From the sequence record MN988522.1: DNA of 64,000 bases, one strand, 5' to 3'. A program made the position numbers and the translations under genes. Each line of letters begins with the position of its first letter. Within the stretch, counting starts at the first letter, position 1. The notes under the pieces are model-generated. The model ran no database searches, was not told where the DNA came from, and was given only the letters and a program-made list of their open reading frames with translations. This document shows, piece after piece, positions 1,408 to 56,350 of the stretch.

Positions 1408-1841
1408 ACTGGTCAGATCTTACAATTGCATTTCAGTACATCGTTAGTAATGTACCAGAACCTATGGGCAAGTCTAGTGATGGGATTCTGAAAGTCGAGT
1501 TTGGTAATGAGAGTCTGTGGGATAAAGAATTCCACATCAAACCTCTAGTCTCAGTTGAACTCGGAGGTTATCAAATAGGTACCTGGAATAGACATACAGT
1601 TATCGGACCATTCGATACTGAAGAAGATGCTATGGAAGGTACACGTAAGAAGATTCTTGAAGCATTCGATATTGTTAATCAAGAAATTTTCGAACATCTT
1701 CGACCTGAGTACTATCATCTTGAGGATGATCAGATCCCTCGATGGAACAATGAAGTTAGTAGATTCTCGGACTCAGAGAAGTCTAAGATGATGAGTCTTG
1801 AGAACGAATTTCTCTCTGTATTAAGCGATCGGAAGGCTTGA
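1404..1841 (+). CDS. Hypothetical protein
   Basis: ATGA overlap with the previous ORF. Confidence 0.7.
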   Translation: MNWSDLTIAFQYIVSNVPEPMGKSSDGILKVEFGNESLWDKEFHIKPLVSVELGGYQIGTWNRHTVIGPFDTEEDAMEGTRKKILEAFDIVNQEIFEHLRPEYYHLEDDQIPRWNNEVSRFSDSEKSKMMSLENEFLSVLSDRKA

Positions 1842-1851
1842 TAGCCTTCCT
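1825..1851 (+). promoter_or_regulatory. Phage promoter-like motif copy 1
   Basis: GCGAT at 1825 and GCCTTCCT at 1844 (19-nt offset); also forms GGAAGGCT-TGAT-AGCCTTCC hairpin. Confidence 0.7.
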
Positions 1852-1880
1852 TTCTTGATAAGAATAATATAGAGATTATT

Positions 1881-2153
1881 ATGAATAATACTATATCTAC
1901 CCAATTGATTTGGGAAGAAGTAGATGAGGACCAGTGGTTTCTTTACTATAATCCTACTGATAATTCTTCTAAGATTTTCATCGGAGAAGTGTACTGGTCT
2001 ATTTCAGGATCTATCAGATGGATTAATAAATTGACAGACTGGAGAGATTCATCATCTTCAATCGAACAAGCACGAGATGACTTGTTCACTAGTTGTCTGG
2101 AAGAACTTAGTAGACTCGATAAGTCATATCAAAGGATAGAGTATGCCAACTGA
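1881..2153 (+). CDS. Hypothetical protein
   Basis: First ORF after the promoter motif. Confidence 0.65.
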   Translation: MNNTISTQLIWEEVDEDQWFLYYNPTDNSSKIFIGEVYWSISGSIRWINKLTDWRDSSSSIEQARDDLFTSCLEELSRLDKSYQRIEYAN

Positions 2154-2571
2154 AATCGTAGATGGTAAAATTGATGGGATCGATATAAACGATCCTCATT
2201 TTACTCTAAAACATATGTATCGAATCATTCCAGAGAGTGAAGCTGGACAAGGACATGTTGATCGTATGCTTGACTTCTTCGTTGAGCATCCATATATTCC
2301 GGAGCAAGATACATATACCAAATATGAATTTGCTAATATTCTAACGAAACATGATCATCGACTAGAGATGACAGGATTTTACTTCAATCCTGATGAAGAA
2401 TTTAGTAACCTGGAAGTCGAGGATGACGAAAAGGCTATTCTACAACCTTATGCACTGATGCTTGCATGCCTACAAGGTAATGCATTCCCTGACCTTATCG
2501 AACAATACATGAAGGAAGCTAAATGGTTTCTCATGTCTAACGGTTGGTGGGATAAAGTACGTCAGGCATAA
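2143..2571 (+). CDS. Hypothetical protein
   Basis: GGA RBS; overlaps the previous ORF. Confidence 0.7.
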   Translation: MPTEIVDGKIDGIDINDPHFTLKHMYRIIPESEAGQGHVDRMLDFFVEHPYIPEQDTYTKYEFANILTKHDHRLEMTGFYFNPDEEFSNLEVEDDEKAILQPYALMLACLQGNAFPDLIEQYMKEAKWFLMSNGWWDKVRQA

Positions 2572-2586
2572 TCTGAAAGGATATGC

Positions 2587-2832
2587 ATGAGTATAGAATA
2601 CTTTATCAAACTAGGGATCAATCTTACATTATCATTATCCTGTATAGGTATGCTGATAATTATGAGGCAGATTCTCCATAAGGAGAGTTTTACTCAGAAA
2701 AGATTGATCATGTTGTTCACGAGTATACTGATTGTAGTCATTCTGGCCATGATCTGGACTGACTACTCATTTGTCGTCTATCGTTACTTGCATCCAGCTG
2801 AGAAATCAGACTTGATCCTTAACGGTAATTAA
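2587..2832 (+). CDS. Small membrane protein (2 predicted TM helices)
   Basis: Two hydrophobic stretches; AAAGGA RBS. Confidence 0.65.
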   Translation: MSIEYFIKLGINLTLSLSCIGMLIIMRQILHKESFTQKRLIMLFTSILIVVILAMIWTDYSFVVYRYLHPAEKSDLILNGN

Positions 2833-2846
2833 TCACTCTAGAATCG

Positions 2847-2873
2847 GCGAACCTAACGTCGGATAGCCTTCCT
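2847..2873 (+). promoter_or_regulatory. Phage promoter-like motif copy 2
   Basis: GCGAA at 2847, GCCTTCCT at 2866. Confidence 0.7.
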
Positions 2874-2909
2874 TAATGTCAGACGTTCGATCGTCTTTCA
2901 GGTTGCCTT

Positions 2910-2952
2910 AGCCAGTATCTTAGTCTTCGGATTAGGATACTGGCTCTTTTTC
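2910..2952 (+). terminator. Strong intrinsic terminator with cUUCGg loop
   Basis: 16-bp stem 2910-2925/2930-2945, loop TTCG, followed by CTTTTTC. Confidence 0.85.
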
Positions 2953-2979
2953 TGTTTCTACTGAAATTAGTGGTGTGAC

Positions 2980-3165
2980 ATGAGTATTAAAGATCGTGAG
3001 ATGAAGTCTCTATGCAATCAACTCAAAACTCTGTTTTGTGGAGGTAAGATAGATGATCTCACTAGATTAATAATTTCGAATGAGCTAGCAATTTTCAATC
3101 GGAAGTACAAGAGTAATCTCACAATGGACATTTCCAATAATGGAATATTGTTCGAGGAACGTTAA
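2980..3165 (+). CDS. Hypothetical protein
   Basis: TAATG overlap with the helicase start. Confidence 0.55.
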   Translation: MSIKDREMKSLCNQLKTLFCGGKIDDLTRLIISNELAIFNRKYKSNLTMDISNNGILFEER

Positions 3166-5414
3166 TGTCAATTGTAGTCGTCAATGGTCAGAACTTTGAT
3201 ATCGATACTCTGGATTTCTCAGAGAAGTCGAAGAGAGATGACTGGCATTCTAATGAAGGTAAGTTCATTAGGCTGCTGAAGCAAGACGTATACCTTACCT
3301 CCAAGATCTTGGAGTATGTCGTAGATAATGTGGACGATCTCATTGTAGGATATAAATCCTCTGACGGTCTTAGTCCATCGTACTTTCGTAAGTCTCTCCT
3401 CGTAGAGATTAATGAGATTCAAAGAAATGGTAAGATCCTAACAGACAATTTTATGAATAGTCTGTTCATCCGTTATAACTCTATCTTTGTTAAGGTTATC
3501 AAAGATCTTTCATCTGCAGTCAGCATTGACGAGAAGGATGAAGACTGGGTATGGACGTATGATAGCGATGGAAAGATCGTCTTTGATTATTCCCACGAAG
3601 CCCTCTCCCGTAGACGTACTCATCTGCAGAATTTCGACCGATCCATCCTTCCATTGGACTATACCAAGCTGGAAGATGTGTTTACCAAGCCTGAATTCAC
3701 TGCTTTATCCAATAAACGTGTGGTATGTTGGTCTTGTGGGTCGTATAAGACCACTTTGATCCGTCAATTCATTGTCAAACACTGGCTTGATGGCATCCTT
3801 TATGCGTGTTCTACGATCGAAGAAGTAAACCTTCTGACATATGATATTGCCTGCTTCATTGGAGAAGAGAATGTCTTCAAGTTGCATCACCAGATTGATA
3901 CTGATATCTACGCAGAGTACCATAAGAATCCTGAGTTTCTGAAAGAGAAGAGTGTTGTAGTCACTACGCACTCTCGTCTCATGAAGGATCCACCTTCGAT
4001 TCTTATTACTCAGATCGATGATCCACTAGGTGGAGATTCTCGACGTCAGTATGTTCTCATCGATGAGAAACCTCAGTTCTATGATCACATCAGCTTGAAC
4101 AATGATCAGGTACAGAATGTGATGAATCTGAGTACAGATCTATCTCCTCGTGAAGCTCAGAAGAAATTTCGAGAAGGTGTGAAGAATGCTTCAGGTATCT
4201 TCAAGTCTCTGAAGCATAACTCTGTTGAGTTGTTGAGTAAATCATCCGTCGATCGATCTGTCAACTTTCTTGACACGAGAGTGAATCCAACTACAGGTGC
4301 TGAGTATTTCGTACCCAACATCAACATGTTGAGAGCTGAGTTCGCAGTTAGTATGATTGTGAAACAGATCAACAAGAAGATCAAGATCGATCCGAACTAC
4401 GAGATCAAGAAAGATAAGAATCGTTACTTCTACAATCTAGGTGATCTGGAATTTAAGAACCTAATCATCTTTGATGGTACAGGTGATCTGATTCTCAATG
4501 AAAGTCCTGACTGGAAGATCATCAAAACTCCTGAGACTAGTTTTAATTTCAAAGGTAGTTTTAATGAGATTGAAAGTGATATTCGTAGAAGACTCGTAGG
4601 TAATGATCTCGAGCACTCCTCACAAGAATTCGATAAGATTATTCAATATCTTATTGGATTGACTGAGAAGCATGAGAAGATCTTCGTAGTCTCTTGGAAG
4701 GACATGAAAGGTAATGAAGATGATATGCCTAAGACAGGTGCTATCATTGACAATAATGTTCTTGCTAAGTTGACTGATCAGAGGATTGTCCAAGCGACTG
4801 ACGATCTGAATGCATACATTAAATTCAGGATTCCTCTAGAGCTTAGACATAAATTCGAGTTTACATACTACTTGTCAGGTAAAACTCGAGGTACGAATCG
4901 TTATGTTGATTGTGATGCAGTTGTATTGTTAGGTAGTTTCTATATTCCTAATCATGCTATTGCTATGATGAATGAACAGAATAATGCGAAGATGACTAAC
5001 GATATGCATTCAATGGCTGAAATCGTTCAAGCTATCTATCGTACGAGAGCTCGTAAGCTCAAACCTGTTGATGTTTATTATACATCTGATTGGAGTAAGC
5101 AACTCATTGTTGATACAATGAAGTATATTAATGCTCCGATCAGTGATGAATTCACATCAGACATACAGACTAAGATGAGATTGTTCTCAATGCAGTATGG
5201 AGTTAATATAACTCCGACTACGACTAAGCTAATTAAACTATTAGCATCTAAGTATTCTGATCTAATAGCAGGTGATACATCTGAATATCAAGTTCCACCT
5301 GATGAAGATAGTCGAGAATTTAAGAGAGGTATTCAAAATCTCTTGAATAAAGTTGATGAATTGAGATACGAGGATAAAAAGTATTCGAGATTCTTCAAGG
5401 TAATACCCGTTTAG
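3165..5414 (+). CDS. Divergent SF2 helicase-like protein (possible origin-binding type)
   Basis: Walker A variant CGSYKTT, Walker B LIDEKP, motif III-like IFDGTG, GKTRGTNRY, motif VI QAIYRTRAR. Confidence 0.65.
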   Translation: MSIVVVNGQNFDIDTLDFSEKSKRDDWHSNEGKFIRLLKQDVYLTSKILEYVVDNVDDLIVGYKSSDGLSPSYFRKSLLVEINEIQRNGKILTDNFMNSLFIRYNSIFVKVIKDLSSAVSIDEKDEDWVWTYDSDGKIVFDYSHEALSRRRTHLQNFDRSILPLDYTKLEDVFTKPEFTALSNKRVVCWSCGSYKTTLIRQFIVKHWLDGILYACSTIEEVNLLTYDIACFIGEENVFKLHHQIDTDIYAEYHKNPEFLKEKSVVVTTHSRLMKDPPSILITQIDDPLGGDSRRQYVLIDEKPQFYDHISLNNDQVQNVMNLSTDLSPREAQKKFREGVKNASGIFKSLKHNSVELLSKSSVDRSVNFLDTRVNPTTGAEYFVPNINMLRAEFAVSMIVKQINKKIKIDPNYEIKKDKNRYFYNLGDLEFKNLIIFDGTGDLILNESPDWKIIKTPETSFNFKGSFNEIESDIRRRLVGNDLEHSSQEFDKIIQYLIGLTEKHEKIFVVSWKDMKGNEDDMPKTGAIIDNNVLAKLTDQRIVQATDDLNAYIKFRIPLELRHKFEFTYYLSGKTRGTNRYVDCDAVVLLGSFYIPNHAIAMMNEQNNAKMTNDMHSMAEIVQAIYRTRARKLKPVDVYYTSDWSKQLIVDTMKYINAPISDEFTSDIQTKMRLFSMQYGVNITPTTTKLIKLLASKYSDLIAGDTSEYQVPPDEDSREFKRGIQNLLNKVDELRYEDKKYSRFFKVIPV

Positions 5415-5530: not shown

Positions 5531-5543
5531 AGAAAGAAAGTCA

Positions 5544-8194: not shown

Positions 8195-8436
8195 CAATAA
8201 ATAGTAATGTATTGCATGCAATTAATGATTTCAAGAACTATATCATTGAACTTGATAATGGTGTACCGTATCGTCGAGCAGTTCAGATAAGAGATCAAGC
8301 TAGTATCTGCAATGATCTGATGAACTATACGAGTGCCAGTATGTGGGATTCTAATCCTCCTGAGTGGCAGGAATTAGATTCACTAGTGACAATGGTATTT
8401 CAAAAGACAAATAAATTGATCTACAAGAGCGAATGA
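8191..8436 (+). CDS. Hypothetical protein
   Basis: ATGA overlap. Confidence 0.6.
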   Translation: MTINSNVLHAINDFKNYIIELDNGVPYRRAVQIRDQASICNDLMNYTSASMWDSNPPEWQELDSLVTMVFQKTNKLIYKSE

Positions 8437-8455
8437 GAGGTCGATTAACCTTCCT
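8429..8455 (+). promoter_or_regulatory. Phage promoter-like motif copy 3
   Basis: GCGAA at 8429, ACCTTCCT at 8448. Confidence 0.7.
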
Positions 8456-8488
8456 CTTTACAACAACGAATCCAGGTATTTTTAGATA

Positions 8489-10098: not shown

Positions 10099-10372
10099 AA
10101 ACGTTGAAGAGATCGTTAGATCATCCTTCGACGGATCGAAATGTCCAGCATTTCTGGAGAGACATATGAGAGTCTCTCCAGATGGTCAAAGACTTGCTCG
10201 AATTATTATGAACAAGTTTGATATTTTCGATACGAACGAAGTCTCTTATAATCTCGTAGAATATTACAATCCAGAAGGTGGTGAGGAATCATTTCTCATT
10301 CACATTAAAGATGACAAGGATGTCTATTTTGATATCCAGGTACCTTCTAAGGCTATTTCTAGTTATATCTGA
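10091..10372 (+). CDS. Hypothetical protein (start at ATG 10091)
   Basis: GGTAG upstream; the longer start lies inside the endonuclease gene. Confidence 0.6.
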   Translation: MHRNVEEIVRSSFDGSKCPAFLERHMRVSPDGQRLARIIMNKFDIFDTNEVSYNLVEYYNPEGGEESFLIHIKDDKDVYFDIQVPSKAISSYI

Positions 10373-11324: not shown

Positions 11325-11619
11325 CCAAGTTTACTCTCGAGTAAGATGTACAAAGTACATTATTCGATATGTTACAGAAGGATATCCTTCGAGTATTCAT
11401 CTTGACTATACTGTAGTTCCAGTCGAAGGTGATCTCGTTCATGCTGAGGTTCATACGTCTCACTCTTTCGATATTAAAGAATTCGTAGTAGGTGCGAGTA
11501 CATATAATATGTCTCAAATTTTCGATACTCATGGAGAAGCTGAGATTGCAGCTAAGAAGAGAATTCGTAACGACTATGAAAAGACGAAATCTCTATTAGA
11601 ACGCTTCAATCTGGCATAA
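11317..11619 (+). CDS. Hypothetical protein
   Basis: Coupled ORF ending at the promoter motif. Confidence 0.6.
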   Translation: MYDQVYSRVRCTKYIIRYVTEGYPSSIHLDYTVVPVEGDLVHAEVHTSHSFDIKEFVVGASTYNMSQIFDTHGEAEIAAKKRIRNDYEKTKSLLERFNLA

Positions 11620-11627
11620 GCCTTCCT
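11601..11627 (+). promoter_or_regulatory. Phage promoter-like motif copy 4
   Basis: ACGCT at 11601 (partial), GCCTTCCT at 11620. Confidence 0.6.
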
Positions 11628-11657
11628 AATTGTCCAGCACCAAATAGGTAATTTATA

Positions 11658-14363: not shown

Positions 14364-14372
14364 TTTGATTAA

Positions 14373-14412
14373 GCCGTACAGGAGTAAGGATAGCCTTCTC
14401 TCTTGTACGGCA
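14373..14412 (+). promoter_or_regulatory. Promoter-like motif copy 5, embedded in a 12-bp hairpin
   Basis: GCCTTCTC at 14393; stem GCCGTACAGGAG/CTCTTGTACGGC. Confidence 0.6.
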
Positions 14413-18947: not shown

Positions 18948-19402
18948 AAATCCGGACATCTCTTTCAATCCTGTTACTATCTTCATCCGTTGCATATGCT
19001 GATCCTAAGGTCAGTGAAGTTGATAAGATGACTCATGTCCCTTCATGGAAGATTCTGAGAGTTGTAGATGGAGATACTGTCAAGGTTATTCTTCCAGAGT
19101 CTCCAGATATTCCTGCACAGCTTCGAGAGATGAGCATTCGTATCTACGGTGTAGATACTCCTGAGAAGGGTGGTCGTGCTAAATGTGCTCAAGAAGCTGC
19201 ACTAGGTCGTAAGTCTACACAATTCGCTAAAGATATCGTCGACCCTAGTTCTGCACAGATCTATGTTCTTCAACATGATAAATTCGGTGGAAGAGTAGAT
19301 GGAGATATCGTAGTTAATGGAGTACCATTGTCCAAGATTCTTATTGACAATGGATTAGCTCATGAATACTACGGTGATACCAAGAAGTCCTGGTGTGATT
19401 GA
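18944..19402 (+). CDS. Thermonuclease (SNase-like) with signal peptide
   Basis: RVVDGDT, IRIYGVDTPE, DKFGGR; hydrophobic leader ending AYA. Confidence 0.9.
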   Translation: MKIRTSLSILLLSSSVAYADPKVSEVDKMTHVPSWKILRVVDGDTVKVILPESPDIPAQLREMSIRIYGVDTPEKGGRAKCAQEAALGRKSTQFAKDIVDPSSAQIYVLQHDKFGGRVDGDIVVNGVPLSKILIDNGLAHEYYGDTKKSWCD

Positions 19403-19459
19403 ACGAATTTGAGGTCCTAAAGCCTTCCTTGTCAGGTCGGTTTTAGGACCTTTTATTTT
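19403..19459 (+). terminator. Intrinsic terminator whose loop contains promoter-like motif copy 6
   Basis: AGGTCCTAAA/TTTAGGACCT stem followed by TTTTATTTT; ACGAA at 19403, GCCTTCCT at 19422. Confidence 0.7.
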
Positions 19460-22032: not shown

Positions 22033-23526
22033 ATGAGTCAGGTGAGCACCATCAAGTTGGAGTTTGCTGATTTCTACAAGATCGCTCTATCATCTGACAG
22101 TCAATTTATTCTTGATTATTTCAGGAAATCTCTTTCAACTGAGTATGAAACATCTTATACTATTAACCTTAGAGGTGGTGGTAAAAAGAAGATAACTCAG
22201 AAGAAGGATATGAAAATCTATCAAGATCTGAAGTCATGCTTGCTAATCGATGCTGGTCTTGTGGACTACATCATAGCAAGCATTTCTACTCTATTGCGAG
22301 AGAACGGACCTGAGAATTTCAAGATTGAATCCTTGTTACCTAAGATCCAACCTCTCGTACTGAGTGAGAAGTGGTTTAAGATTTTTAATAGTCATCCTCG
22401 TGGTGAAGAATTTGCTAAGAATCAGTTAACTGATTTTCCTAAGATCACTTCTTCATTCGGCGGTACTGCAGAACTATTTACAGGATACGGTAAGACAGAA
22501 TTGCAATTATCTATTGCTGAATGTTTTACTGAACAATATCCAGGTAATGTCCTTATTCTTGCTCCAGATAATGCGATTAAAGATGAAATCTATCTTCGAT
22601 CTAAAAGATGGGAAGTTGATGTCGGAGATCGTGATTGGAGTAAAAGGATCAATGTAATCAATCCTGTAGGATTCATGAGATCCAAGGCATTGAGTAGTGA
22701 ATCGAGAGAGTGGCACTCTGACGTCAAGATGGTTTTAACTGATGAGTCTCATCACTTAACTGCAGAATCTTGGCATAAGATCTTTGGATTAATTTGTCAT
22801 CTTGATAGATCATACGGCTTCTCCGCATCTGTTGACGTTGGTGAAGGTCAGATTATGCTACCAGGTAGTACTACTCTGAAGAGTCTAGGACCTCGAAATA
22901 TGAAGATCGTAGGTTTGTCAGGTAGTCTTAAGGTACGTCGTAGACTTCCAGTTCCGGTATCTGTTCTTAGAGTTTATCATCGTGTAGCTGATCCTACAAA
23001 ATGTAGAGATCAAGACGGTTGGATGATCGCTTATGATCAAACAATTACGCAGATGAAATTTGCTGCAGATATGTTGAATACAATGGTAGAAACGGATCGA
23101 ATATTCTTCGTTCCGATTTATAAGAAGGAATCAGGATTCCAATTGTACAAGAATTTGATCTCGTTAGGGTCAAGTTCGATCTTTTGGACTTCAGATGAAC
23201 TTCATGTTAATGGTGAGAAAGTCACCACGGACAACCCTCTTGCATACGTTAAAGAATTTATGCGTAAAACTCCTGCAAGAACTCTAATATCGACACGATT
23301 TGAAGGTATCGATATTCCTAATCTTGACGGGATTGTACCACTTACAGGTACGAGTCATCGAATGACGATTCAGCCTGTAGGACGATCAGCACGTAATCAA
23401 GACGTGTTGGTTATTTTAATGTATGACAAGAATAATCCTATTGTTATGTATCAATCTAAAATACGCAGAAATAGAATCGAGAATGAATATAACATCGTGA
23501 GTTCGCGATCTAGAACAATTGATTAA
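22033..23526 (+). CDS. SF2 DNA helicase (UvsW-like; start at ATG 22033)
   Basis: AAGGAG RBS; TGYGKT, DESHH, GFSAS, EGIDIPNL, QPVGRSAR. Confidence 0.88.
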   Translation: MSQVSTIKLEFADFYKIALSSDSQFILDYFRKSLSTEYETSYTINLRGGGKKKITQKKDMKIYQDLKSCLLIDAGLVDYIIASISTLLRENGPENFKIESLLPKIQPLVLSEKWFKIFNSHPRGEEFAKNQLTDFPKITSSFGGTAELFTGYGKTELQLSIAECFTEQYPGNVLILAPDNAIKDEIYLRSKRWEVDVGDRDWSKRINVINPVGFMRSKALSSESREWHSDVKMVLTDESHHLTAESWHKIFGLICHLDRSYGFSASVDVGEGQIMLPGSTTLKSLGPRNMKIVGLSGSLKVRRRLPVPVSVLRVYHRVADPTKCRDQDGWMIAYDQTITQMKFAADMLNTMVETDRIFFVPIYKKESGFQLYKNLISLGSSSIFWTSDELHVNGEKVTTDNPLAYVKEFMRKTPARTLISTRFEGIDIPNLDGIVPLTGTSHRMTIQPVGRSARNQDVLVILMYDKNNPIVMYQSKIRRNRIENEYNIVSSRSRTID

Positions 23527-23553
23527 CCTCTAGAGAGGTTAATAAGCCTTCCT
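23527..23553 (+). promoter_or_regulatory. Promoter-like motif copy 7 (downstream box only)
   Basis: AATAAGCCTTCCT with GCC at 23546; upstream box absent, with palindrome AACCTCT-AG-AGAGGTT in its place. Confidence 0.55.
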
Positions 23554-23614
23554 TATTGAGGAGGATTTCTTAGATATCCCTATCAATTAGAAATTTTAAG
23601 TTGACGAGAATTAA

Positions 23615-26682: not shown

Positions 26683-26687
26683 TTCGA

Positions 26688-26714
26688 GCGAAGTTAGGTG
26701 CGATAAACCTTCCT
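26688..26714 (+). promoter_or_regulatory. Promoter-like motif copy 8
   Basis: GCGAA at 26688, ACCTTCCT at 26707. Confidence 0.7.
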
Positions 26715-26768
26715 TCTTCGTTGAGCGGATTCGAGTTATTGAATTCGTTCATTTAATGTGAGAGAAAT

Positions 26769-27908: not shown

Positions 27909-27947
27909 TGGGTGGGATTCAGAAATGGATTCCACCCAATTCTTTTG
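27909..27947 (+). terminator. Intrinsic terminator
   Basis: 12-bp stem TGGGTGGGATTC/GGATTCCACCCA followed by TTCTTTT. Confidence 0.75.
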
Positions 27948-30422: not shown

Positions 30423-30460
30423 AAGTAGTAGCTTCGTACCAGCGGAGCTACTACTTTTCA
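30423..30460 (+). terminator. Intrinsic terminator
   Basis: AAGTAGTAGCT/AGCTACTACTT stem followed by TTCA. Confidence 0.7.
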
Positions 30461-32145: not shown

Positions 32146-32183
32146 GGGCTGGTATCTCAGTAGAGGTACTGGCCCTTCTTTTT
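32146..32183 (+). terminator. Intrinsic terminator
   Basis: 13-bp stem GGGCTGGTATCTC/GAGGTACTGGCCC followed by TTCTTTTT. Confidence 0.8.
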
Positions 32184-32194: not shown

Positions 32195-32827
32195 ATGGAT
32201 ATTGCATTATTTGGTCTACTTGACTATACTCTCTTAAGTTGGGTACTCTTTGTAGCACTCATCGGAATTGTAGGTCTCATCGAAGAGAATGAACTACCTG
32301 TTCCGGCATTCATTACCTTTATTGTTGGTCTCACAGGACTTCAATACTTTACGGATCTGAAACCTTGGACATACGTCTACGAGAATCCATGGTACTTCCT
32401 ACTGTATGTAGTTATCTACATTGTAGCAGGTATCATATGGTCTCATGTTAAGTGGGTACTTTATCTTCGAGAGATTAAGAATTATCATCCTACGAGCATC
32501 AAAGAAGCAGAGGCTCATGCACTCGTAGTCGAGAAACGTAATGAAGATTATCGTAAGACTCATCCTAACTACGTAGAATCAACTGTTGATGTTAACGAGA
32601 AAGCGATCGAGTATACTACGAAGAAATTTCGATTGAGATCTCTTCCTCCGAAGGCTTCTGAGAAGAAGACTAGAATCACATCTTGGTTGATGTACTGGCC
32701 GATCTCGATGTTCTGGACAGTTGTTGACAAGTTTGTAGTCAATCTGTTTAACAATCTGTTCGAACTGATTCGTGCTAGCTATCAGCGTGTATCTGATAAG
32801 ATGTTCGCTGACTTCACGACCAAGTGA
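32195..32827 (+). CDS. Membrane protein
   Basis: Several hydrophobic segments; GGAGA RBS. Confidence 0.7.
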   Translation: MDIALFGLLDYTLLSWVLFVALIGIVGLIEENELPVPAFITFIVGLTGLQYFTDLKPWTYVYENPWYFLLYVVIYIVAGIIWSHVKWVLYLREIKNYHPTSIKEAEAHALVVEKRNEDYRKTHPNYVESTVDVNEKAIEYTTKKFRLRSLPPKASEKKTRITSWLMYWPISMFWTVVDKFVVNLFNNLFELIRASYQRVSDKMFADFTTK

Positions 32828-32845
32828 GGCTCGATTAGCCTTCCT
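32819..32845 (+). promoter_or_regulatory. Promoter-like motif copy 9
   Basis: ACCAA at 32819 (one mismatch), GCCTTCCT at 32838. Confidence 0.65.
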
Positions 32846-32874
32846 CTTTATCGAGAGAACGAAGTGAGATATTT

Positions 32875-34849: not shown

Positions 34850-35304
34850 TGAAGAAGAATGTATTAGTAGGATTAGATCATAGGATCCTTACAGGTCTAG
34901 ATAATCTTGTCCTACTCTTATGCACCAGACTACAAATCAAGAAAATCCATCTTCAGAGACTTCTGGTTTGTATTTATTGTGTCTTATTGCATAAAATTGG
35001 ATTTTCTGTCATAGGCATCCTTGTTCTACAAGGTCTACAAGAATTGTCCCTGTTAAATATGGGGACGAAATCATACAACAATTACATCGAAGGAACTCGA
35101 TTTGAGCCATTCAATATTTATGTCAGGCTCATCTCCTTCCTATTCTGTATATATTATACTGCATATTCATTCGCTCTTCATGAGATCACTACAATTAATG
35201 TACTTCAGAAGATTATTCTGGAAGTGTACGTGTATAGTGTATTCTGTCGAGACTACAACGGTACGACGCAAGTAGAGTACTGGGACGAGACGAAGTTCGC
35301 CTGA
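34849..35304 (+). CDS. Hypothetical membrane protein
   Basis: Hydrophobic; TAATG overlap. Confidence 0.55.
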   Translation: MKKNVLVGLDHRILTGLDNLVLLLCTRLQIKKIHLQRLLVCIYCVLLHKIGFSVIGILVLQGLQELSLLNMGTKSYNNYIEGTRFEPFNIYVRLISFLFCIYYTAYSFALHEITTINVLQKIILEVYVYSVFCRDYNGTTQVEYWDETKFA

Positions 35305-35316
35305 ATAAGCCTTCTC
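35290..35316 (+). promoter_or_regulatory. Promoter-like motif copy 10
   Basis: ACGAA at 35290, GCCTTCTC at 35309. Confidence 0.65.
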
Positions 35317-35381
35317 TTCTTAGAGAATCAAGAATTTTCTACTTAGATATAAATTTAATTTAACATAACATTAGGTATAAA

Positions 35382-40777: not shown

Positions 40778-40820
40778 GCGTAATTCTTCTAAATAAACGG
40801 AAGAATTACGCTTTATTTTT
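40778..40820 (+). terminator. Intrinsic terminator
   Basis: GCGTAATTCTTC/GAAGAATTACGC stem followed by TTTATTTTT. Confidence 0.8.
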
Positions 40821-40831
40821 GTCCATATGAA

Positions 40832-40858
40832 GCGAAGGAGCGTCCCTTAAGCCTTCCT
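40832..40858 (+). promoter_or_regulatory. Promoter-like motif copy 11
   Basis: GCGAA at 40832, GCCTTCCT at 40851. Confidence 0.7.
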
Positions 40859-40958
40859 CTCTCGTAAGACGTTAATTCTAGAAATTCCAATACGGAGTAT
40901 GTAATGTCTTCTATTAAAAACTCCGATCCTAAAACCATCTCCTGAAAGGAAAATTCTC

Positions 40959-43214
40959 ATGGATCTCAATAAGTTCAAAGTAACTATCGGTGGTAAGTCT
41001 GTCAATGTGACCGCATTCACTCCTGACACTACAGCTACCAAGGCTGCAGGTAAGACTCACCATGTCCTTCTCATCGACCGTTCCGGTTCGATGTACTCCT
41101 CGATCAGTTATCTGATTGATCAGGTTCAGAATACAGTTAAGCTCATCGGTCAAGACGATCTGATTAGCATTCTCTGGTTCTCTGGTCAGGGTAGTAAGGG
41201 AGTTATCTGCCAAGGTGTTAAGGGATCTGAGGACATTACTACTGTTCTCAATAAGTTCCGTAGCGTTCTTGGTACGACATGCTTCTCTGAACCTCTCGCA
41301 GAGTCGACTAATGTTGTTGCTATGTACAAGGACGTTGTTGATCAGTCCGTTATCACTCTCTTCACGGACGGTTGCCCAGTAGTCAGCTGGTCTACTAAGG
41401 AAGAGACTGAACGTTGCCACGAGATCATTAAAGATCTCGTTGATGATCTCAATGTCTCGGCAGTCAATACCGTAGGTTATGGTAACTACTACAATCGTGA
41501 TTTCTTGCAGACTCTTTCCGAGGCATCGGATCAGGGGATGTTCGTTCACAGTAGTAAGATTGAACAATTTACTGACGTCTTCACCTCAGCAGTGGAGGTC
41601 GCCAGTGGTCTGGTACTTCAGTCTCTGGACATCGAAGTATCGGATGACGACGCTGATATTCTTTACGTAGGTAATGGTACCAGTGGTCTTCACAAGTCTG
41701 ACCTCAGCATGCGTCGTCTTGACAAGTCTCGTAACCTTGTCTTCATCGTATCTGAGAATTCCAAGTACGATCTGACGATCAACGGTGTTACGGATCACAA
41801 GATTGAGTCCATGACTCAGTCCTCGAATCCTGAATTCGTTGAGAACTTCCTCTACTCGTATGCAGATTCTCTCTACTATCGTGGAGAACGTCAGAAGGCT
41901 CTTGACATTATTGTCAACAATCTTCGCGACAAGCATCTCGCAGATCTGATGATGAATGCATTCACCATCGACGAAGTAGCTGATGTTCAGAAAGCTCTGA
42001 ACATTGCATGTGAGTTCAAGTCTGAACGTTACATCAGTGGTAAGTGCGGAGTAGGATACCTTCCCAAGAAGGATGCATTCTGCTTGATGGATCTCTTTAA
42101 TCTGTTCTTCAAGAAGGATGTAACCGCATATTATGTCCCATTCTCGAAGAATGTTGAGGAGTACCAGCGTATCGGTCGTAAGGTAACCGATGAATTCAAT
42201 CTGTTCACCAAGTCTCCTGAAGAAGTTATCGTACCACTGAACGACTTCGTCTGGAACAAGGACAAGCTGAATCTCTCGATCCGTATTCTGATCCCTGGTA
42301 CAGTAACTCTCAATCCGAAGGCTGCTAAGACAGTAGGACTTGCTTCTACCTATCCGTCCAAGATCTATCGTAACCATACGTTTATCAAAGACGGTCAGCT
42401 GAATATTAAGACTGCAGAATTCCTTCTGTCGTCTGATGTACTTGAAGTACTTAATGCGAATAAGATCGGTAACCGTATCCTGTCTACGGATGAGGATGTT
42501 GGTGGGATCCTTCTGAATCGAGTAGTAGTCGATCTCACGAAGCTTCCTGTTATCAATCGTCTTTACATTGATAACTCCGACTCTCTGGATGATCTGAAGG
42601 ATATTGTCGTCAATATCTCTAAGGCTGAGGCTTCCATCAAGGTAGCTAAGGATGCACTGGCAACCGTTCTGGCATCGAATGTGAATCTGACGAAGGTCGG
42701 AGCATATAAGGGTCTTACGGCTGATCAGATCACCGTACTCGAAAATCACGGTATCTCCAAGGATGGAGTCTACGGAGGTATCGATAATGTCAAGCCTAAG
42801 GCTGCGGATTCAGATAGCTACGAAGTACGTACTCTCGAATTCTATCTGAAGGGATTCTCGTCGCTTCCTTCCATCGCTGACTTCAACAAGATGCTCAATG
42901 GTGAGAAGAGAGTGAATGCTCCTGGACAAATGATGATCGACTATCTGAAGGATCTTGAATTCCGACTGAAGGCCGAGAATCTTAGTCTGAATCAGCCGAA
43001 TGCAGCTGTTAGAGACTTCCTTAATGAGGAACTCGAAGAGCTTAAGGCTGGCCTAGCTACTGCTCGTAATCATCTCAATGCTGTCAAGATGGCTAAGGTG
43101 CTTACACATGACTTCTTCCATGGTCTAGTTGCTGACGACAAGGGTAACTACTCTTATGGAGATGAGAATCATACTATGATTCTTCGTAATGACCGTACTG
43201 TAGAGTACGTTTAA
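40959..43214 (+). CDS. Large vWA (MIDAS) domain protein
   Basis: LLIDRSGSM, GTTCF, LFTDG, VGYG; long C-terminal region of unknown fold. Confidence 0.85.
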   Translation: MDLNKFKVTIGGKSVNVTAFTPDTTATKAAGKTHHVLLIDRSGSMYSSISYLIDQVQNTVKLIGQDDLISILWFSGQGSKGVICQGVKGSEDITTVLNKFRSVLGTTCFSEPLAESTNVVAMYKDVVDQSVITLFTDGCPVVSWSTKEETERCHEIIKDLVDDLNVSAVNTVGYGNYYNRDFLQTLSEASDQGMFVHSSKIEQFTDVFTSAVEVASGLVLQSLDIEVSDDDADILYVGNGTSGLHKSDLSMRRLDKSRNLVFIVSENSKYDLTINGVTDHKIESMTQSSNPEFVENFLYSYADSLYYRGERQKALDIIVNNLRDKHLADLMMNAFTIDEVADVQKALNIACEFKSERYISGKCGVGYLPKKDAFCLMDLFNLFFKKDVTAYYVPFSKNVEEYQRIGRKVTDEFNLFTKSPEEVIVPLNDFVWNKDKLNLSIRILIPGTVTLNPKAAKTVGLASTYPSKIYRNHTFIKDGQLNIKTAEFLLSSDVLEVLNANKIGNRILSTDEDVGGILLNRVVVDLTKLPVINRLYIDNSDSLDDLKDIVVNISKAEASIKVAKDALATVLASNVNLTKVGAYKGLTADQITVLENHGISKDGVYGGIDNVKPKAADSDSYEVRTLEFYLKGFSSLPSIADFNKMLNGEKRVNAPGQMMIDYLKDLEFRLKAENLSLNQPNAAVRDFLNEELEELKAGLATARNHLNAVKMAKVLTHDFFHGLVADDKGNYSYGDENHTMILRNDRTVEYV

Positions 43215-43219: not shown

Positions 43220-43270
43220 AGGCTCCATTATTCTTCTCGCAAGGGATGAGTAATGGAGCCTTTTCTTTTG
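43220..43270 (+). terminator. Intrinsic terminator (GCAA loop)
   Basis: AGGCTCCATTA/TAATGGAGCCT stem followed by TTTCTTTT. Confidence 0.8.
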
Positions 43271-44865: not shown

Positions 44866-45116
44866 TTCCATCAAAATGGACGGTTTATATCGTAGAGTGT
44901 AGAGATAAATCCTTGTATACAGGAATCACTACTGATATAAACCGTCGTCTACTCCAGCACAATAATGGTACTGGAGCCAAGTATACAAGAAGCAGAAGAC
45001 CTGTTAGTATCGTTTATACCGAGAAATTACCAGATAGGTCTTCTGCTCTCAAACGTGAATACGCTATTAAGCAACTATCTCGTAAGGAGAAGTTGCAATT
45101 AGTAAATTTTAGATAG
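44856..45116 (+). CDS. Small GIY-YIG nuclease (UPF0213/YhbQ-like; start at ATG 44856)
   Basis: VYIVECRDKSLYTGITTDINRRLLQHN.G.GAKYTR.RRP...ALKREYAIK. Confidence 0.92.
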   Translation: MEIVPSKWTVYIVECRDKSLYTGITTDINRRLLQHNNGTGAKYTRSRRPVSIVYTEKLPDRSSALKREYAIKQLSRKEKLQLVNFR

Positions 45117-45184
45117 GTTCACTTAACGTCTCCAAGGGATTCTTCTTTAGGAAGGGACCTTGGAGATTCTTAGAGGTAATTTAA

Positions 45185-45800: not shown

Positions 45801-45860
45801 TTGTGATCTAGGACTGATTTTACAGATATTCGACTCCTGATTAAGGACTTATTCCAGTCA

Positions 45861-45887
45861 GCGAAGTAGAGGCCGGAGAGCCTTCCT
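45861..45887 (+). promoter_or_regulatory. Promoter-like motif copy 12
   Basis: GCGAA at 45861, GCCTTCCT at 45880. Confidence 0.7.
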
Positions 45888-45900
45888 TGTTAGACGTCAA

Positions 45901-49903: not shown

Positions 49904-50803
49904 ATGAACGATTTTAATGTAATCCTTACAGGTTCTGCTGGTTACATTGGAAGCATCGTTGGCGATCGTCTACTGAAATCCAATTCGATTGATTTGGAGA
50001 CAGTAGACGTCGTCTCTGACGTTCTTCCAGTAGATACTATCTTAACTGAAGTTGGTAATCTATCCAACAAGTCATCTGATGTCCTTGTTCATCTTGCTGC
50101 AAAGATCTCAGTAGTCGAATCTCATAAGCAAGCTCGTCAGTACTACGAGAACAATTGTAGTCAATTCCATGAGATGTTGAATGATCGTGGTAACTATTTC
50201 AAGCATGTTATCTATGCATCCTCTTTCTCGATTTATGATTCTGATTTGAGTATCTATCCTCAGTCTGTCTATGCATCCACCAAATACGAAGGTGAATGGA
50301 TTCTCAAGAGATGGGCTCAGATGACGAATCGAGATTATTCAATCCTACGATTTGCCAATCCAATTGGCGTTAGTCAATCACTTCACTCTCATATTGCAGA
50401 CCGTATTCAATCGAGCTATGCTAATGTTATGTGGAGACTTGCTCGATGCAAATTACTAGGTGAGATGTTCTACATTCATGATCTACCTGGTATGACACGT
50501 GATTTTTATCCCGTTGAATGGATTGGATACGCTATCGATTGGATCGCGAAGAATGGTCCCGTAGGTACTGTAAATCTAGGTAGTGGTAAGCCTGTATCGG
50601 TTATGGATCTTCTTCAGCATATCTGTGAGAAGTATAATATCAGTTACAAATATGTTCTACCACCTGAAGGTACTGCTCTAGGTATTACCAAGAAGGTTGA
50701 TGTATTCAAAGAAGGTATTCCTGATTTTGATACATACGATCCAGTTGTATATTGTGAGAAGTCGTTTTTAGATTATCTATCGTTGATTCAGAACGCGAAC
50801 TAA
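49904..50803 (+). CDS. NAD-dependent NDP-sugar epimerase/dehydratase (GalE-like)
   Basis: TGSAGYIGS, HLAA, YASS, YASTK (YxxxK), LRFANPIG, TRDF, NLGSG. Confidence 0.9.
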   Translation: MNDFNVILTGSAGYIGSIVGDRLLKSNSIDLETVDVVSDVLPVDTILTEVGNLSNKSSDVLVHLAAKISVVESHKQARQYYENNCSQFHEMLNDRGNYFKHVIYASSFSIYDSDLSIYPQSVYASTKYEGEWILKRWAQMTNRDYSILRFANPIGVSQSLHSHIADRIQSSYANVMWRLARCKLLGEMFYIHDLPGMTRDFYPVEWIGYAIDWIAKNGPVGTVNLGSGKPVSVMDLLQHICEKYNISYKYVLPPEGTALGITKKVDVFKEGIPDFDTYDPVVYCEKSFLDYLSLIQNAN

Positions 50804-50821
50804 CGCTAGATTAGCCTTCCT
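50795..50821 (+). promoter_or_regulatory. Promoter-like motif copy 13
   Basis: GCGAA at 50795, GCCTTCCT at 50814. Confidence 0.7.
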
Positions 50822-50830
50822 TCTCGTAGA

Positions 50831-53112: not shown

Positions 53113-53123
53113 GGAGTCTCGAC

Positions 53124-53363
53124 ATGAAACATCTTCTTGAGAAAGCAACGACTCTCGTCAAGCAGTCTAATAAACTGACTCTGGAATACCGTAAGTCTCC
53201 AGATGAATTGAAATCTAAGACTCAAGAGATCGTCAAGCACTTTCTCGAATTCAACGAGATCGAATCGAAAGAAGATTTCATAGATCAATTGTCGTCCAAA
53301 TCTGAGGAGACAGGTAATATGGATTACCTGTCTGCAGCTGAGATTATCCGAGAGTACTCTTAA
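53124..53363 (+). CDS. Hypothetical protein (probable start MKHLLE)
   Basis: AAGGAG RBS upstream. Confidence 0.55.
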   Translation: MKHLLEKATTLVKQSNKLTLEYRKSPDELKSKTQEIVKHFLEFNEIESKEDFIDQLSSKSEETGNMDYLSAAEIIREYS

Positions 53364-53668: not shown

Positions 53669-53676
53669 GAGGTAAT

Positions 53677-54642
53677 ATGAAAACTGTATTAGGTCTTGAT
53701 CCTGGGTACGGAGACTTCAAGGTATGCTTCGGTAATTCTAAAGGGATTATCTCTAAGCTATACAAGTTCAACTCCGTACTAGGTCGTGTTGATGTCAGTC
53801 AACATATCAACGATACTCGAGTTTATGGATATAAAGGTACGACCTACTATGTAGGTGAGATGGCCTTGAAACTTGAGTCATCTCGAATCATCGACTTGAT
53901 GTCTTACAACAATCTGGAGACATTCTCTCCTCTCCTGATTGAACATGTCATCAATGAACTAGGAGAAGTTCCAGATATCGTCGTATGTGGTCTTTCGATC
54001 GCTCACGTTGACTATTCAGGATACTATCGAGATGCGATTCTTAACTATCTTGTTAAGGAGAAGAATCTTCCAATCAAGGATGTCCGCATCATCCCACAAG
54101 GTGTAGGTGGTAAGTTAACGTATGACAAGTATGGTCGTACATTCCCTGCCCTCACATCAGAATTCAGTGATGACAACAACTATGTAGGTTGTGATATTGG
54201 ATTCAATACACTCGATGTATTCCATGTCATTCAGAACAAGGTATCTCCTAACTTGATTAGAGGTATTGAGAGTCAAGGTGTAGTCAAGATCGTAACTCGA
54301 CTTCTTGAGTATATCAAGAATGACTACAGTCTGGAGTTCTCTGTTAAGGAAGGTAAGAACATCCTTGATAATGGTCAATTTAAGATCCGTGGACGTGAAT
54401 TTGATGTCACCAAACAGATTGAAGTGATCAAACGTTCTTATCTTGAAGAAGTCAAGGAACTCATCGAGAATGAATTCGGAGCAGTACTTGACAAGGTCGA
54501 GAAGATCAAGATGTTTGGAGGAGGTTCATATCTCTTCAATACGATGAATGACTCCTTCATCGAAACTCCAGAATCTCGTGCTGAATACTATAATTCCATC
54601 GGGAATTATCTACATGGCTTGACAATTGTCGAGAAAGATTAA
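53677..54642 (+). CDS. ParM/StbA-family actin-like ATPase
   Basis: GLDPGYGDFK (phosphate 1), IIPQGVG, GCDIGFNTLD (phosphate 2), FGGGS (adenosine). Confidence 0.9.
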   Translation: MKTVLGLDPGYGDFKVCFGNSKGIISKLYKFNSVLGRVDVSQHINDTRVYGYKGTTYYVGEMALKLESSRIIDLMSYNNLETFSPLLIEHVINELGEVPDIVVCGLSIAHVDYSGYYRDAILNYLVKEKNLPIKDVRIIPQGVGGKLTYDKYGRTFPALTSEFSDDNNYVGCDIGFNTLDVFHVIQNKVSPNLIRGIESQGVVKIVTRLLEYIKNDYSLEFSVKEGKNILDNGQFKIRGREFDVTKQIEVIKRSYLEEVKELIENEFGAVLDKVEKIKMFGGGSYLFNTMNDSFIETPESRAEYYNSIGNYLHGLTIVEKD

Positions 54643-54646
54643 TCTT

Positions 54647-54686
54647 AAGGTCTACTAGAAGAGATTCTAGTAGACCTTTTCTTTTT
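54647..54686 (+). terminator. Intrinsic terminator (GAGA loop)
   Basis: Perfect 14-bp stem AAGGTCTACTAGAA/TTCTAGTAGACCTT followed by TTCTTTTT. Confidence 0.85.
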
Positions 54687-54695
54687 GAGGATAAA

Positions 54696-55055
54696 ATGCT
54701 CAAATTAGATAGAAGTGTCAAAGAGTCTGAGTGTCTACACTACGAATTTGATATTAATGGTGGTTATAGCATTACACTAAAAATCGTCTTTGATGATACT
54801 GAAGAGAATGCGATTCACTTTGATTCTCATGATCACGATGTTCAGATTAATGGATTTAAATATTATATTTTAGACTCAGATACATACAGTAATGGGACAT
54901 CAATGAGGATTATGAAGATATCGTCTACAAATGATGATAGTGCTAAATACCTGATGTCTTATATTGAAGGTTTTATCATCAAAAATAAATTAGGAAACTC
55001 TAGCGGACTTCGATATAGATCTTATATACGATCAGATCAACATTCACTCAAGTGA
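54696..55055 (+). CDS. Hypothetical protein
   Basis: GAGG RBS. Confidence 0.55.
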   Translation: MLKLDRSVKESECLHYEFDINGGYSITLKIVFDDTEENAIHFDSHDHDVQINGFKYYILDSDTYSNGTSMRIMKISSTNDDSAKYLMSYIEGFIIKNKLGNSSGLRYRSYIRSDQHSLK

Positions 55056-55064
55056 GGACAGAAG

Positions 55065-55793
55065 ATGGCTCGTTGCTATGTAGGATGTAGTGGATTCTCG
55101 TATAATCATTGGAATGATAACTTCTACCCTGCAGGAGTAGAGCGGTTTTCATTTTATACGAGTCAATTTGATTCATTAGAGATCAATAGTTCATTCTACA
55201 GATTACCTAGTGCAAGCGTATTCTACTCATGGTATCGACGATCACCTGCTCATATGACATTCACTGTGAAAGCTCCTCAGACGATTACTCATCGTAAGAA
55301 GCTAAAGGATGCTGACGATATAGTTCAGAGATTCTATGAGAATACTCTTGAGCTAGGTGACAAGATGAAATGTGTCTTATGGCAGTTACCTCCTAATTTC
55401 TCCATAAGAATGTATGATCGTGTCAAGAAATTCTGTGACAGTATTCATAACAGATTTCCTAATTCAGCATTCGAGTTCAGACATCCTTCATGGATGCAGA
55501 CTCACGTACCTCAACTTCTATCTGCATACGACTTTGAGTTTGTACGTACAGATTTTCATAAATACGTAAATGTATCCATGGATGGATCCTCGTCTAAATT
55601 CCAGTACTATCGATTACATGGACCTACAGGTCAGTATCACGGTCGCTACACTGATGAGTTTCTTGAGAATATAGCTGATCGTCTAACGGATGGATCATTC
55701 GTATTCTTCGATAATGATAGTGGAGGTCAAGCTCCTAGGGATGCTAAAAGATTAATCAAAATTCTAGAGACAAGAAATGAAATTAAATTATAG
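55065..55793 (+). CDS. DUF72-family TIM-barrel protein
   Basis: YVGCSGFSY..W...FYP, EINSSFYRLP, KAPQTITH, LWQLPP, EFRHPSW, YYRLHG, FFDND. Confidence 0.93.
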   Translation: MARCYVGCSGFSYNHWNDNFYPAGVERFSFYTSQFDSLEINSSFYRLPSASVFYSWYRRSPAHMTFTVKAPQTITHRKKLKDADDIVQRFYENTLELGDKMKCVLWQLPPNFSIRMYDRVKKFCDSIHNRFPNSAFEFRHPSWMQTHVPQLLSAYDFEFVRTDFHKYVNVSMDGSSSKFQYYRLHGPTGQYHGRYTDEFLENIADRLTDGSFVFFDNDSGGQAPRDAKRLIKILETRNEIKL

Positions 55794-56322
55794 AGCATAT
55801 GCAGGAATTGGATCAAGAAGTACTCCTCCACATATTCTTGAATTTATGAGAATTCTAGCATTCAAGCTTGGATCTCAAGAAGATCCGTGGACTGGTCGAT
55901 CAGGTCACGCTGATGGTGCAGATGATGCATTCGAAGTAGGTATGGAACAAGCTAATGGACCTATGGAGATCTTTCTACCGTGGAGAGGTATGGCTAACAG
56001 TCGATGTAAGAGTGATTCTCCGTATTACGAAATCAAAACAATTGCTTACGATCTAGCTTCTAGGATTCACCCTAAATGGTACGGATTAACTCATGGAGCT
56101 AAGAAACTTCATGCTAGGAATACTTATCAAGTCTTAGGTTACGATCATCAGACTTGGAGTAAAGCTGTTGTATGCTATACTTCTGACGGTCTACCGATTG
56201 GAGGTACTCGTACAGCGATTAAGATAGCAGAGATGCACGGTATTCCGGTTATCAATCTAGGTGATCCTGAGTGTAAATACGAAACTCCTGATCAAGTTGT
56301 GGAATATTTAAACTCTCTATAG
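55777..56322 (+). CDS. SLOG-superfamily (DprA/Smf-like Rossmann) protein
   Basis: YAGIGSRSTP, RSGHADGADDAFE, IFLPW, HARNTYQVLG, GGTRTAI. Confidence 0.8.
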   Translation: MKLNYRAYAGIGSRSTPPHILEFMRILAFKLGSQEDPWTGRSGHADGADDAFEVGMEQANGPMEIFLPWRGMANSRCKSDSPYYEIKTIAYDLASRIHPKWYGLTHGAKKLHARNTYQVLGYDHQTWSKAVVCYTSDGLPIGGTRTAIKIAEMHGIPVINLGDPECKYETPDQVVEYLNSL

Positions 56323-56323
56323 A

Positions 56324-56350
56324 GCGAATCTAGCGTGGGAAAGCCTTCCT
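56324..56350 (+). promoter_or_regulatory. Promoter-like motif copy 14
   Basis: GCGAA at 56324, GCCTTCCT at 56343. Confidence 0.7.

Follow-up and report, generated by a model that had tools for sequence, protein, structure and literature searches.

A bipartite, promoter-like motif at gene boundaries of Rhizobium phage RHph_TM40 and its metagenomic relatives

Introduction

What function is served by a two-part motif, a pyrimidine-rich core beginning RCCTTC with a short box at a fixed distance upstream, that recurs between the genes of Rhizobium phage RHph_TM40? We address this question for a 64-kb stretch of its genome, hereafter the window (positions 62001-126000 of record MN988522.1, 207,431 bp), in which an initial annotation made from the sequence alone had listed 14 copies of the motif. 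The phage belongs to the family Kleczkowskaviridae, whose sole genus is Cuauhnahuacvirus, and its genes lie on the + strand from 1 to ~159 kb, with structural and lysis genes on the minus strand at 159-207 kb. We refer to the motif as class A and propose that it most likely represents a phage-specific transcription start signal, one of two such classes in this genome. More specifically, we assign a probability of about 0.7 to the reading that class A acts at the DNA level as a promoter in RHph_TM40 and its relatives, used by a bacterial-type polymerase whose specificity is supplied by the phage, as judged from sequence comparison; on this reading, it is a real promoter class that has not been described before. 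The literature that we searched holds no description of transcription signals or of a polymerase subunit for these phages, and the two promoter-like classes together with terminators provide the first map of such signals in a family of 200-kb rhizobial phages that had not been studied before. Window positions are used below unless genome positions are indicated.

Class A motif and its distribution

Counting from the R of RCCTTC as column 0, we built a class A matrix of 33 columns (-21 to +11) from the 14 window copies. RCCTTC is present on the + strand at all 14 positions listed in the initial annotation (Table 1), and its counts for the upstream box are exact, with RCGA beginning at column -19 in 10 of 14 copies, RCGAA in 9, and the three partial boxes at 11620, 14393, and 32838. 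The core consists of A at column -1 (14/14), G or A at column 0 (12 and 2), an invariant CCTTC at columns 1 to 5 (each 14/14), and C or T at column 6 (12 and 2), followed by a pyrimidine tail in which T occurs in 12, 10, 10, and 12 of the 14 copies at columns 7, 8, 10, and 11, respectively. The upstream box has a purine at column -19 (12 copies), an invariant C at -18 (14/14), G at -17 (12), and A at -16 and -15 (11 each). Thirteen variable bases separate this box from the invariant A at column -1, and the spacing between box (columns -19 to -15) and core (columns -1 to +7) is invariant across all 26 strong copies in the genome as well as in the relatives described below. We found no conserved columns outside columns -21 to +11 in flanks examined from -70 to +45.

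Class A is a real and highly non-random motif. The full matrix recovers the 14 window copies at 23.6 to 39.1 bits, and the sole other match above 8 bits in the window is at 43014 (9.9 bits). Across the remaining 143 kb of the genome, 12 sites exceed 23 bits and 14 exceed 20 bits, compared with 0.00 at both thresholds in 40 shuffles. The bare 7-mer RCCTTCY occurs 60 times in the window (21.5 expected), 23 times on the + strand and 37 times on the minus strand, mostly within open reading frames (ORFs). The 33-column matrix is specific for the motif, and the 7-mer, which is commoner on the minus strand and within ORFs, is not.

All 26 strong copies are co-directional with the local genes. Twenty-five are on the + strand, at 17.5-149 kb or just ahead of gene 001, and the sole copy in the 48-kb minus-strand structural module is likewise oriented with its genes, on the minus strand at genome position 160550 and 76 nt ahead of EVB94_332. 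Every one of the 14 window cores falls within annotated intergenic DNA, which makes up ~2.7 kb of the 64 kb (4.3%). The sequence places the copies at gene boundaries, and their initial placement at operon boundaries is a matter of interpretation. Column 0 lies 34-41 nt from the start codon in 10 of the 26 copies and within 50 nt in 14. A tRNA-Ser gene starts at column +17 of one copy and a tRNA-Asn gene at column +25 of another, which excludes a translation signal and bounds the position of a transcription start. The stop codon of the preceding gene often lies within the class A spacer or upstream box, and at about one-third of the 26 sites the upstream box is located within coding sequence.

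Conservation in metagenomic relatives

The relatives of RHph_TM40 in the annotated phage collection are all at least 99% identical to it, a search of IMG/VR with the DnaB-like gene returned no relatives, and the exact two-box pattern gave just 7 matches in IMG/VR, each single and unrelated. Protein searches did recover metagenomic relatives, with 55-37% identity for the gene encoding an RNA polymerase beta-prime subunit and 47-33% for the SbcCD-fusion gene of the window. The metagenomic relatives derive from samples ERR3179704, ERR2738329, SRR27841369, ERR13714919, and ERZ926024. The nearest relative (contigs L013, L014, L019, and L020; beta-prime 55% and SbcCD fusion 47% identical to RHph_TM40) contains five strong + strand class A copies with core and spacing as in RHph_TM40 and with C at column -18, G at -17, and A at -15 in all five. 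One of these, at L013 576, is orthologous to the RHph_TM40 copy at genome position 148956, ahead of a 5'-deoxynucleotidase gene, and another, at L019 10254, is orthologous to the window copy at 40851, lying 101 nt (108 nt in RHph_TM40) from the gene for a ~750-aa vWA protein. A weaker minus-strand copy at L013 12664 (16.7 bits), before a ~97-aa gene, parallels the minus-strand copy at 160550.

In a more distant relative, L021 (SbcCD 36%), an identical core recurs in seven intergenic copies on the + strand, five of them 29-43 nt before genes. The upstream box of these copies retains C at column -18 (7/7) and otherwise departs from that of RHph_TM40, with T at -17 in 7/7 copies (G in 22/26 in RHph_TM40) and T or C at -16 (5 and 2). 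In L015 and L017, the core and the C at -18 are likewise kept and other letters of the upstream box differ. The motif is absent from the more distant contigs L022, L023, and L024, and L028, which holds mostly late genes, has no class A copy on the coding strand. A conserved core combined with a lineage-specific upstream box at fixed spacing is what would be expected of a protein-DNA site with two contacts. We also note that on L019 the copy orthologous to 40851 is immediately followed by a long hairpin and T-run in the leader (10262-10320), and that another class A copy opens a 1.3-kb stretch with no called gene (1282-2589).

A second motif class in the early region

RHph_TM40 carries a second class of motif, absent from the initial annotation, that we refer to as class B. 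Its 17 intergenic copies are all on the + strand and score 42-57 bits (Table 1). The first block comprises 13 nt (columns -24 to -12), 9 columns of which are identical in 17/17 copies, and is followed by an 11-nt spacer. The second block, at columns 0 to 7, reads G (17/17), G (17/17), A (16), and then T, T, C, T, T (each 17/17), with a tail of C at column 8 (14), T at column 10 (16), and T at column 11 (13) before purines. A TAG in the first block frequently doubles as the stop codon of the preceding gene. Fourteen of the 17 copies are located in the early region (1-62 kb, with small ORFs), one precedes a ligase gene, and the one at genome position 154117 precedes the beta-prime operon, which carries class B and not class A. 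Class-B-like sites also occur in the nearest relative, where the letters of the first block are different; an orthologous site before its own beta-prime operon is among them.

The second block of class B agrees with class A at columns 0, 3, 4, 5, 7, 10, and 11. Alignment similarity of the two classes is highest at register 0 (0.54), followed closely by registers +3 (0.50) and -1 (0.47) because of the repeated T-T-C rhythm, so that a core shared by class A and class B is suggestive. The genome thus seems to hold two classes whose downstream blocks are related, one for the early region and one for DNA metabolism. No late-gene promoter motif was found in the 17 gaps of the minus-strand module (159363-206701), where only words resembling ribosome-binding sites are enriched; several of these gaps hold terminator hairpins. 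The 730-bp divergent region at 206702-207431 ends in a very AT-rich run of short repeats (207380-207431), just upstream of gene 001 and flanked by copies of class A (207186) and class B (50); it may represent an origin or have a regulatory function.

Comparison with host promoters

We compared class A with host promoters using a sigma-70 scan based on the tool's built-in consensus and rhizobial consensus patterns taken from the literature (PMC4943231, PMC4167512, PMC6180224). Sigma-70-like sites numbered 59, 64, and 47 in three window segments (65.5, 60.2, and 55.0 expected) and 38 in L001 (46.9 expected), with no strand bias. Published SigA, RpoE4, RpoH, and ECF29 (extracytoplasmic function [ECF] sigma factor) patterns of Rhizobium etli and Sinorhizobium meliloti matched at chance level on both strands, with at most one match on a motif copy, and the ECF26 consensus did not match class A in a comparison made by eye only. 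The class A core (columns 0 to 6) also fails to match the -10 consensus of R. etli (PMC4943231). The lack of enrichment in the scan and the chance-level matches to SigA uphold the earlier statement that the motif does not resemble a sigma-70 promoter.

A host alternative sigma factor could nevertheless read class A with no specificity factor encoded by the phage. R. etli encodes 23 sigma factors, 18 of ECF type, most of them with no known targets (PMC4167512), a motif of two boxes at fixed spacing upstream of genes on the coding strand suits a sigma-family promoter, and we detected no phage sigma factor or activator in the proteins screened. We nonetheless consider this explanation unlikely, given the chance-level matches above and the arrangement of two related motif classes by genome region. 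In addition, the upstream box differs among related phages and the core stays constant, a pattern that is easier to reconcile with a factor that evolves along with the phage than with a host sigma factor.

RNA structure and terminators

An RNAalifold consensus fold of 27 class A copies contained 0 pairs and no covariation, and an Rfam search of the copies gave no match. The only recurrent pairing, of the spacer with the core, involved 55% paired positions compared with 52% and 49% in slid controls, and per-site fold z-scores ranged from +1.5 to -4.9 with a mean of -1.5. We reject a structured RNA or riboswitch on the basis of these results, and a hairpin promoter on the grounds that stem position varies and many copies have no stem. 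A role as an intrinsic terminator is likewise rejected, as few copies (19422 and 1844) pass the scan rule and true terminators occupy other gaps: of the 13 window gaps of at least 35 nt that have no motif, at least 7 hold a long perfect hairpin followed by a T-run (Table 1). The initial annotation had the motif define the transcription units of this region, a role that class A appears to share with class B and at least 8 intrinsic terminators. Several window terminators directly precede a gene with no recognizable promoter, which suggests partial read-through. The copy at 2866 and the hairpin at 2910-2945 would delimit a ~75-nt transcript, which is a small-RNA candidate with no Rfam match above threshold.

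Taken together, the absence of a conserved fold, the mismatch to the host sigma consensus sequences compared, and the presence of terminators in other gaps make promoter function the best reading of class A. We regard it as quite unlikely that class A instead acts in RNA, as a cleavage or processing site or as a leader element in long polycistronic transcripts. The tight start-codon distance in 10 of 26 copies, the complementarity of the pyrimidine run to purine-rich ribosome-binding sites, the location of several copies in or beside hairpins (with the negative mean z-score), and the proximity of copies to tRNA genes, which are processed, are all consistent with such a role. It is at odds, however, with the lack of consensus structure and covariation, with two boxes at fixed spacing of which the upstream one is replaced wholesale in a relative, and with the frequent location of that box inside the preceding coding sequence. 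A translation signal is rejected as well, given the two copies that lie 17 and 25 nt ahead of tRNA genes.

Regulatory sites and recombination junctions

We give even less weight to the proposal that class A is the site of a phage regulator, an operator or activator site beside promoters whose core lies elsewhere. The upstream box is short and lineage specific, as regulator sites often are, and an activator was among the options put forward in the initial annotation. Against this, there is no other conserved column from -70 to +45, the copies are not accompanied by sigma-70-like sites, and the best-conserved part is the core, placed where a -10 element would be. It is very unlikely that the repeats are mainly recombination or gene-cassette junctions, possibly serving as promoters as well: although they lie exactly at gene boundaries, contain preceding stop codons (in class A spacers and as TAG in the first block of class B), and share the genome with many homing endonuclease genes, their orientation strictly follows transcription even in the minus-strand module, similarity stops at the motif borders, and copies are retained at orthologous sites in relatives with only 47-55% protein identity. 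The records of RHph_TM21B and RHph_TM39 (MN988560.1 and MN988559.1) are partial genomes with 20-N scaffold gaps, and the apparent deletions in them are runs of N in partial assemblies, so a recombination test with these genomes is void.

Phage-encoded transcription proteins

Outside the window, RHph_TM40 encodes a beta-prime subunit of 1,127 aa (genome positions 155072-158455) with all five Rpb1 domains. The protein aligns collinearly with the beta-prime subunit of bacteria (its residues 7-760 with residues 24-827 in Escherichia coli, E value of ~1e-150) and keeps all columns that are invariant among phage and bacterial homologues, among them N417, D419, F420, D421, G422, D423, and both cysteine clusters; its catalytic loop and zinc cysteines are conserved. 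A bacterial beta query against the phage and the contigs of its relatives found nothing (best E value, 2.1; beta-prime control, 1.6e-146), and no beta gene is annotated. A single-subunit polymerase is neither annotated nor present among the large proteins screened, and no transcription domains were found in 30 further mid-sized proteins.

The beta-prime gene is flanked by the same uncharacterized ORFs in all relatives. The families of EVB94_323 and EVB94_325 (Table 1) are paralogues (hhalign probability of 94.5%, E value of 7.8e-8), and the EVB94_329 family is kept just downstream of beta-prime even in the most distant relative. These neighboring ORFs gave no match to Pfam, PHROGs, or PDB profiles, and the model of the EVB94_329 family (predicted local distance difference test [pLDDT] score of 47.6) is too poor for a fold search.

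The initial annotation attributed recognition of the motif to a phage-encoded sigma factor, activator, or RNA polymerase. The part of this claim that stands is a promoter-like, phage-specific element, and we infer that a phage-encoded factor takes part in its recognition; the 46 proteins screened yielded no sigma factor or activator, and a link between beta-prime and class A is conjecture. A possible but doubtful extension is that the phage beta-prime replaces that of the host in the host polymerase and that the resulting hybrid enzyme, guided by the paralogous proteins of the EVB94_323 and EVB94_325 families, reads two promoter classes with a common non-canonical -10-like core and different upstream boxes. 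If true, this would represent takeover of host transcription by subunit replacement, with a new family of specificity factors. Neither class is host-like, and the finding of an intact beta-prime as the only transcription protein, with no beta and no recognizable sigma factor, raises the question of how this lineage redirects transcription, for which the motifs provide a handle.

Proposed promoter organization

In the promoter reading that we favor, for which the indirect evidence is strong, class A would be read in the direction of the genes and would serve at least 26 transcription units, mostly nucleotide-metabolism, replication, recombination, and tRNA genes at 62-150 kb. There would be two contact regions at fixed spacing, a lineage-specific upstream box with the invariant C at column -18 and the conserved core. 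Transcription would start at about columns +9 to +16 (at tRNA-Ser, not beyond column +16), putting the core near -10 and the upstream box near -30. If the start is close to where purines first become frequent downstream of the pyrimidine run (~column +12), the core would lie at about -12 to -6 and the upstream box at about -31 to -27. This would be the geometry of a polymerase of the bacterial type that is directed either by a sigma-like factor or by an activator standing in for the -35 contact. The reading polymerase would likely be a form other than the host housekeeping holoenzyme acting alone.

Several observations weigh against this proposal. Two strong copies lie inside coding sequence (genome positions 129326 and 130134), and hairpins follow or enclose several others (2866, 19422, 26707, 14393, and genome position 137361), so that an RNA-level role is possible for individual copies. 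The 46 proteins screened, with ~200 small ORFs outside the screen, include no sigma factor, activator, or second polymerase subunit, and the AlphaFold model of the EVB94_325 family, all-helical with a pLDDT score of 67.6, had no Foldseek match (best E value, 1.5). The consensus comparison with the host covers only some of its 23 sigma factors (PMC4167512), and the literature searched contains no transcript 5' ends or expression data for this phage family.

Comparison with other phage promoter systems

Promoters of T7-like single-subunit polymerases form one continuous block spanning the start site. Class A is similarly highly conserved, gene-directional, and repeated at the gene boundaries of a co-directional genome, but consists of two boxes with 13 variable bases between them. 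In the Bacillus phage SPO1 and for the late genes of T4, promoters are read by phage-encoded sigma factors acting on the host core polymerase. Sigma-encoding jumbo phages belong to this group as well (PMC7824862, PMC7598289). RHph_TM40 resembles these systems in having two conserved boxes, at a fixed spacing, that differ from host promoters and distinct classes in different parts of the genome, and differs in that Pfam, PHROGs, and the fold search of the one usable model revealed no sigma domain. Jumbo phages that have no polymerase of their own usually encode recognizable sigma homologues (PMC7824862, PMC7598289), whereas RHph_TM40 encodes a beta-prime and no sigma factor that we could find.

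The middle promoters of T4 (MotA/AsiA sigma appropriation) offer a parallel in geometry, with a phage box that is centered near -30, is separated from the -10 element by 12 ± 1 bp, and replaces the -35 contact (PMC2988021). The corresponding spacing in class A is 13 nt, if its core is taken as the -10 element, and both types of element stand ahead of DNA-metabolism genes in long co-directional arrays in genomes with a separate early promoter class. However, the downstream element in T4 is the -10 element of host sigma-70 and the class A core is not host-like, the box letters differ, and the 46 proteins screened include no MotA or AsiA domain. The jumbo phages phiKZ and AR9 share with RHph_TM40 a homologue of a multisubunit polymerase subunit and a computable motif upstream of operons (PMC7598289). 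Their early promoters are AT-rich blocks of ~10 nt centered at -10 and their late promoters have 4-5 specified bases (PMC7598289), whereas class A is 33 bp long, bipartite, and contains G+C; they also encode two sets of beta and beta-prime homologues, which are split, compared with one intact, cellular-type beta-prime and no beta in RHph_TM40.

Feature coordinates and additional observations

TABLE 1 Motif copies, hairpins, and genes next to beta-prime (window positions unless marked as genome or contig positions)
Feature	Position	Strand	Column 0	Score (bits)	Remarks
Class A	1823-1855	+	1844	32.8	37 nt before EVB94_175
Class A	2845-2877	+	2866	36.0	Next annotated gene 299 nt away
Class A	8427-8459	+	8448	38.7	41 nt before EVB94_189
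Class A	11599-11631	+	11620	25.0	38 nt before thyX; preceding stop codon ends at column -1
Class A	14372-14404	+	14393	23.6	36 nt before EVB94_204; degenerate upstream box
Class A	19401-19433	+	19422	35.4	49 nt before EVB94_211; core in loop of 10-bp hairpin, then T-run
Class A	23525-23557	+	23546	26.7	69 nt before DnaB-like primase/helicase; box reduced to C at -18
Class A	26686-26718	+	26707	37.6	62 nt before EVB94_225; 13-bp hairpin (26722-26751) in presumed leader
Class A	32817-32849	+	32838	34.5	37 nt before 5'-3' exonuclease gene
Class A	35288-35320	+	35309	26.9	73 nt before EVB94_237
Class A	40830-40862	+	40851	35.2	108 nt before 751-aa vWA gene; orthologue in relative, L019 10254
Class A	45859-45891	+	45880	38.9	27 nt before EVB94_253
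Class A	50793-50825	+	50814	34.6	35 nt before EVB94_259
Class A	56322-56354	+	56343	39.1	36 nt before homing endonuclease gene EVB94_268
Class B, only window copy	45113-45148	+	45137	53.5	Before EVB94_251
Class B, early region		+	Genome 50, 6907, 14394, 18268, 21436, 27097, 30021	42-57	
Class B, early region (continued)		+	Genome 32240, 34997, 44222, 46117, 46693, 58172, 61827	42-57	
Class B, outside early region		+	Genome 107137, 142551, 154117	42-57	Genome 107137 is the window copy at 45137
Terminator-like hairpin	253-286	+			15 bp; gap with no motif
Hairpin and T-run	2910-2945	+			16 bp, perfect; 44 nt downstream of column 0 of the 2866 copy
Terminator-like hairpin	27909-27938	+			13 bp and T-run; after EVB94_225; gap with no motif
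Hairpin and T-run	30423-30456	+			15 bp; gap with no motif
Terminator-like hairpin	32146-32175	+			13 bp and T-run; gap with no motif
Terminator-like hairpin	40778-40811	+			13 bp and T-run; 19 nt upstream of class A copy 40830-40862 (terminator, then putative promoter, in one gap)
Long hairpin and T-run	43220-43261	+			After vWA gene; gap with no motif
Terminator-like hairpin	54647-54678	+			14 bp and T-run; gap with no motif
EVB94_323, EVB94_325	L004 2993-3724 and 4167-4823				Next to beta-prime; orthologues in L013, L015, L017

The gap before EVB94_178 is mostly filled by an unannotated + strand ORF of 61 aa (2980-3165), whose stop codon overlaps the start codon of EVB94_178. RHph_TM40 contains 20 tRNA genes within 128-142 kb, interspersed with homing endonuclease genes; the tRNA-Ser gene that begins 17 nt after column 0 of a class A copy has the anticodon ACT and lies at L003 28457-28546. 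Among the relatives, intein-splicing domains are present in the PolA gene of L015 (4045-8079) and in the beta-prime gene of L024 (10001-14551; 1,516 aa).

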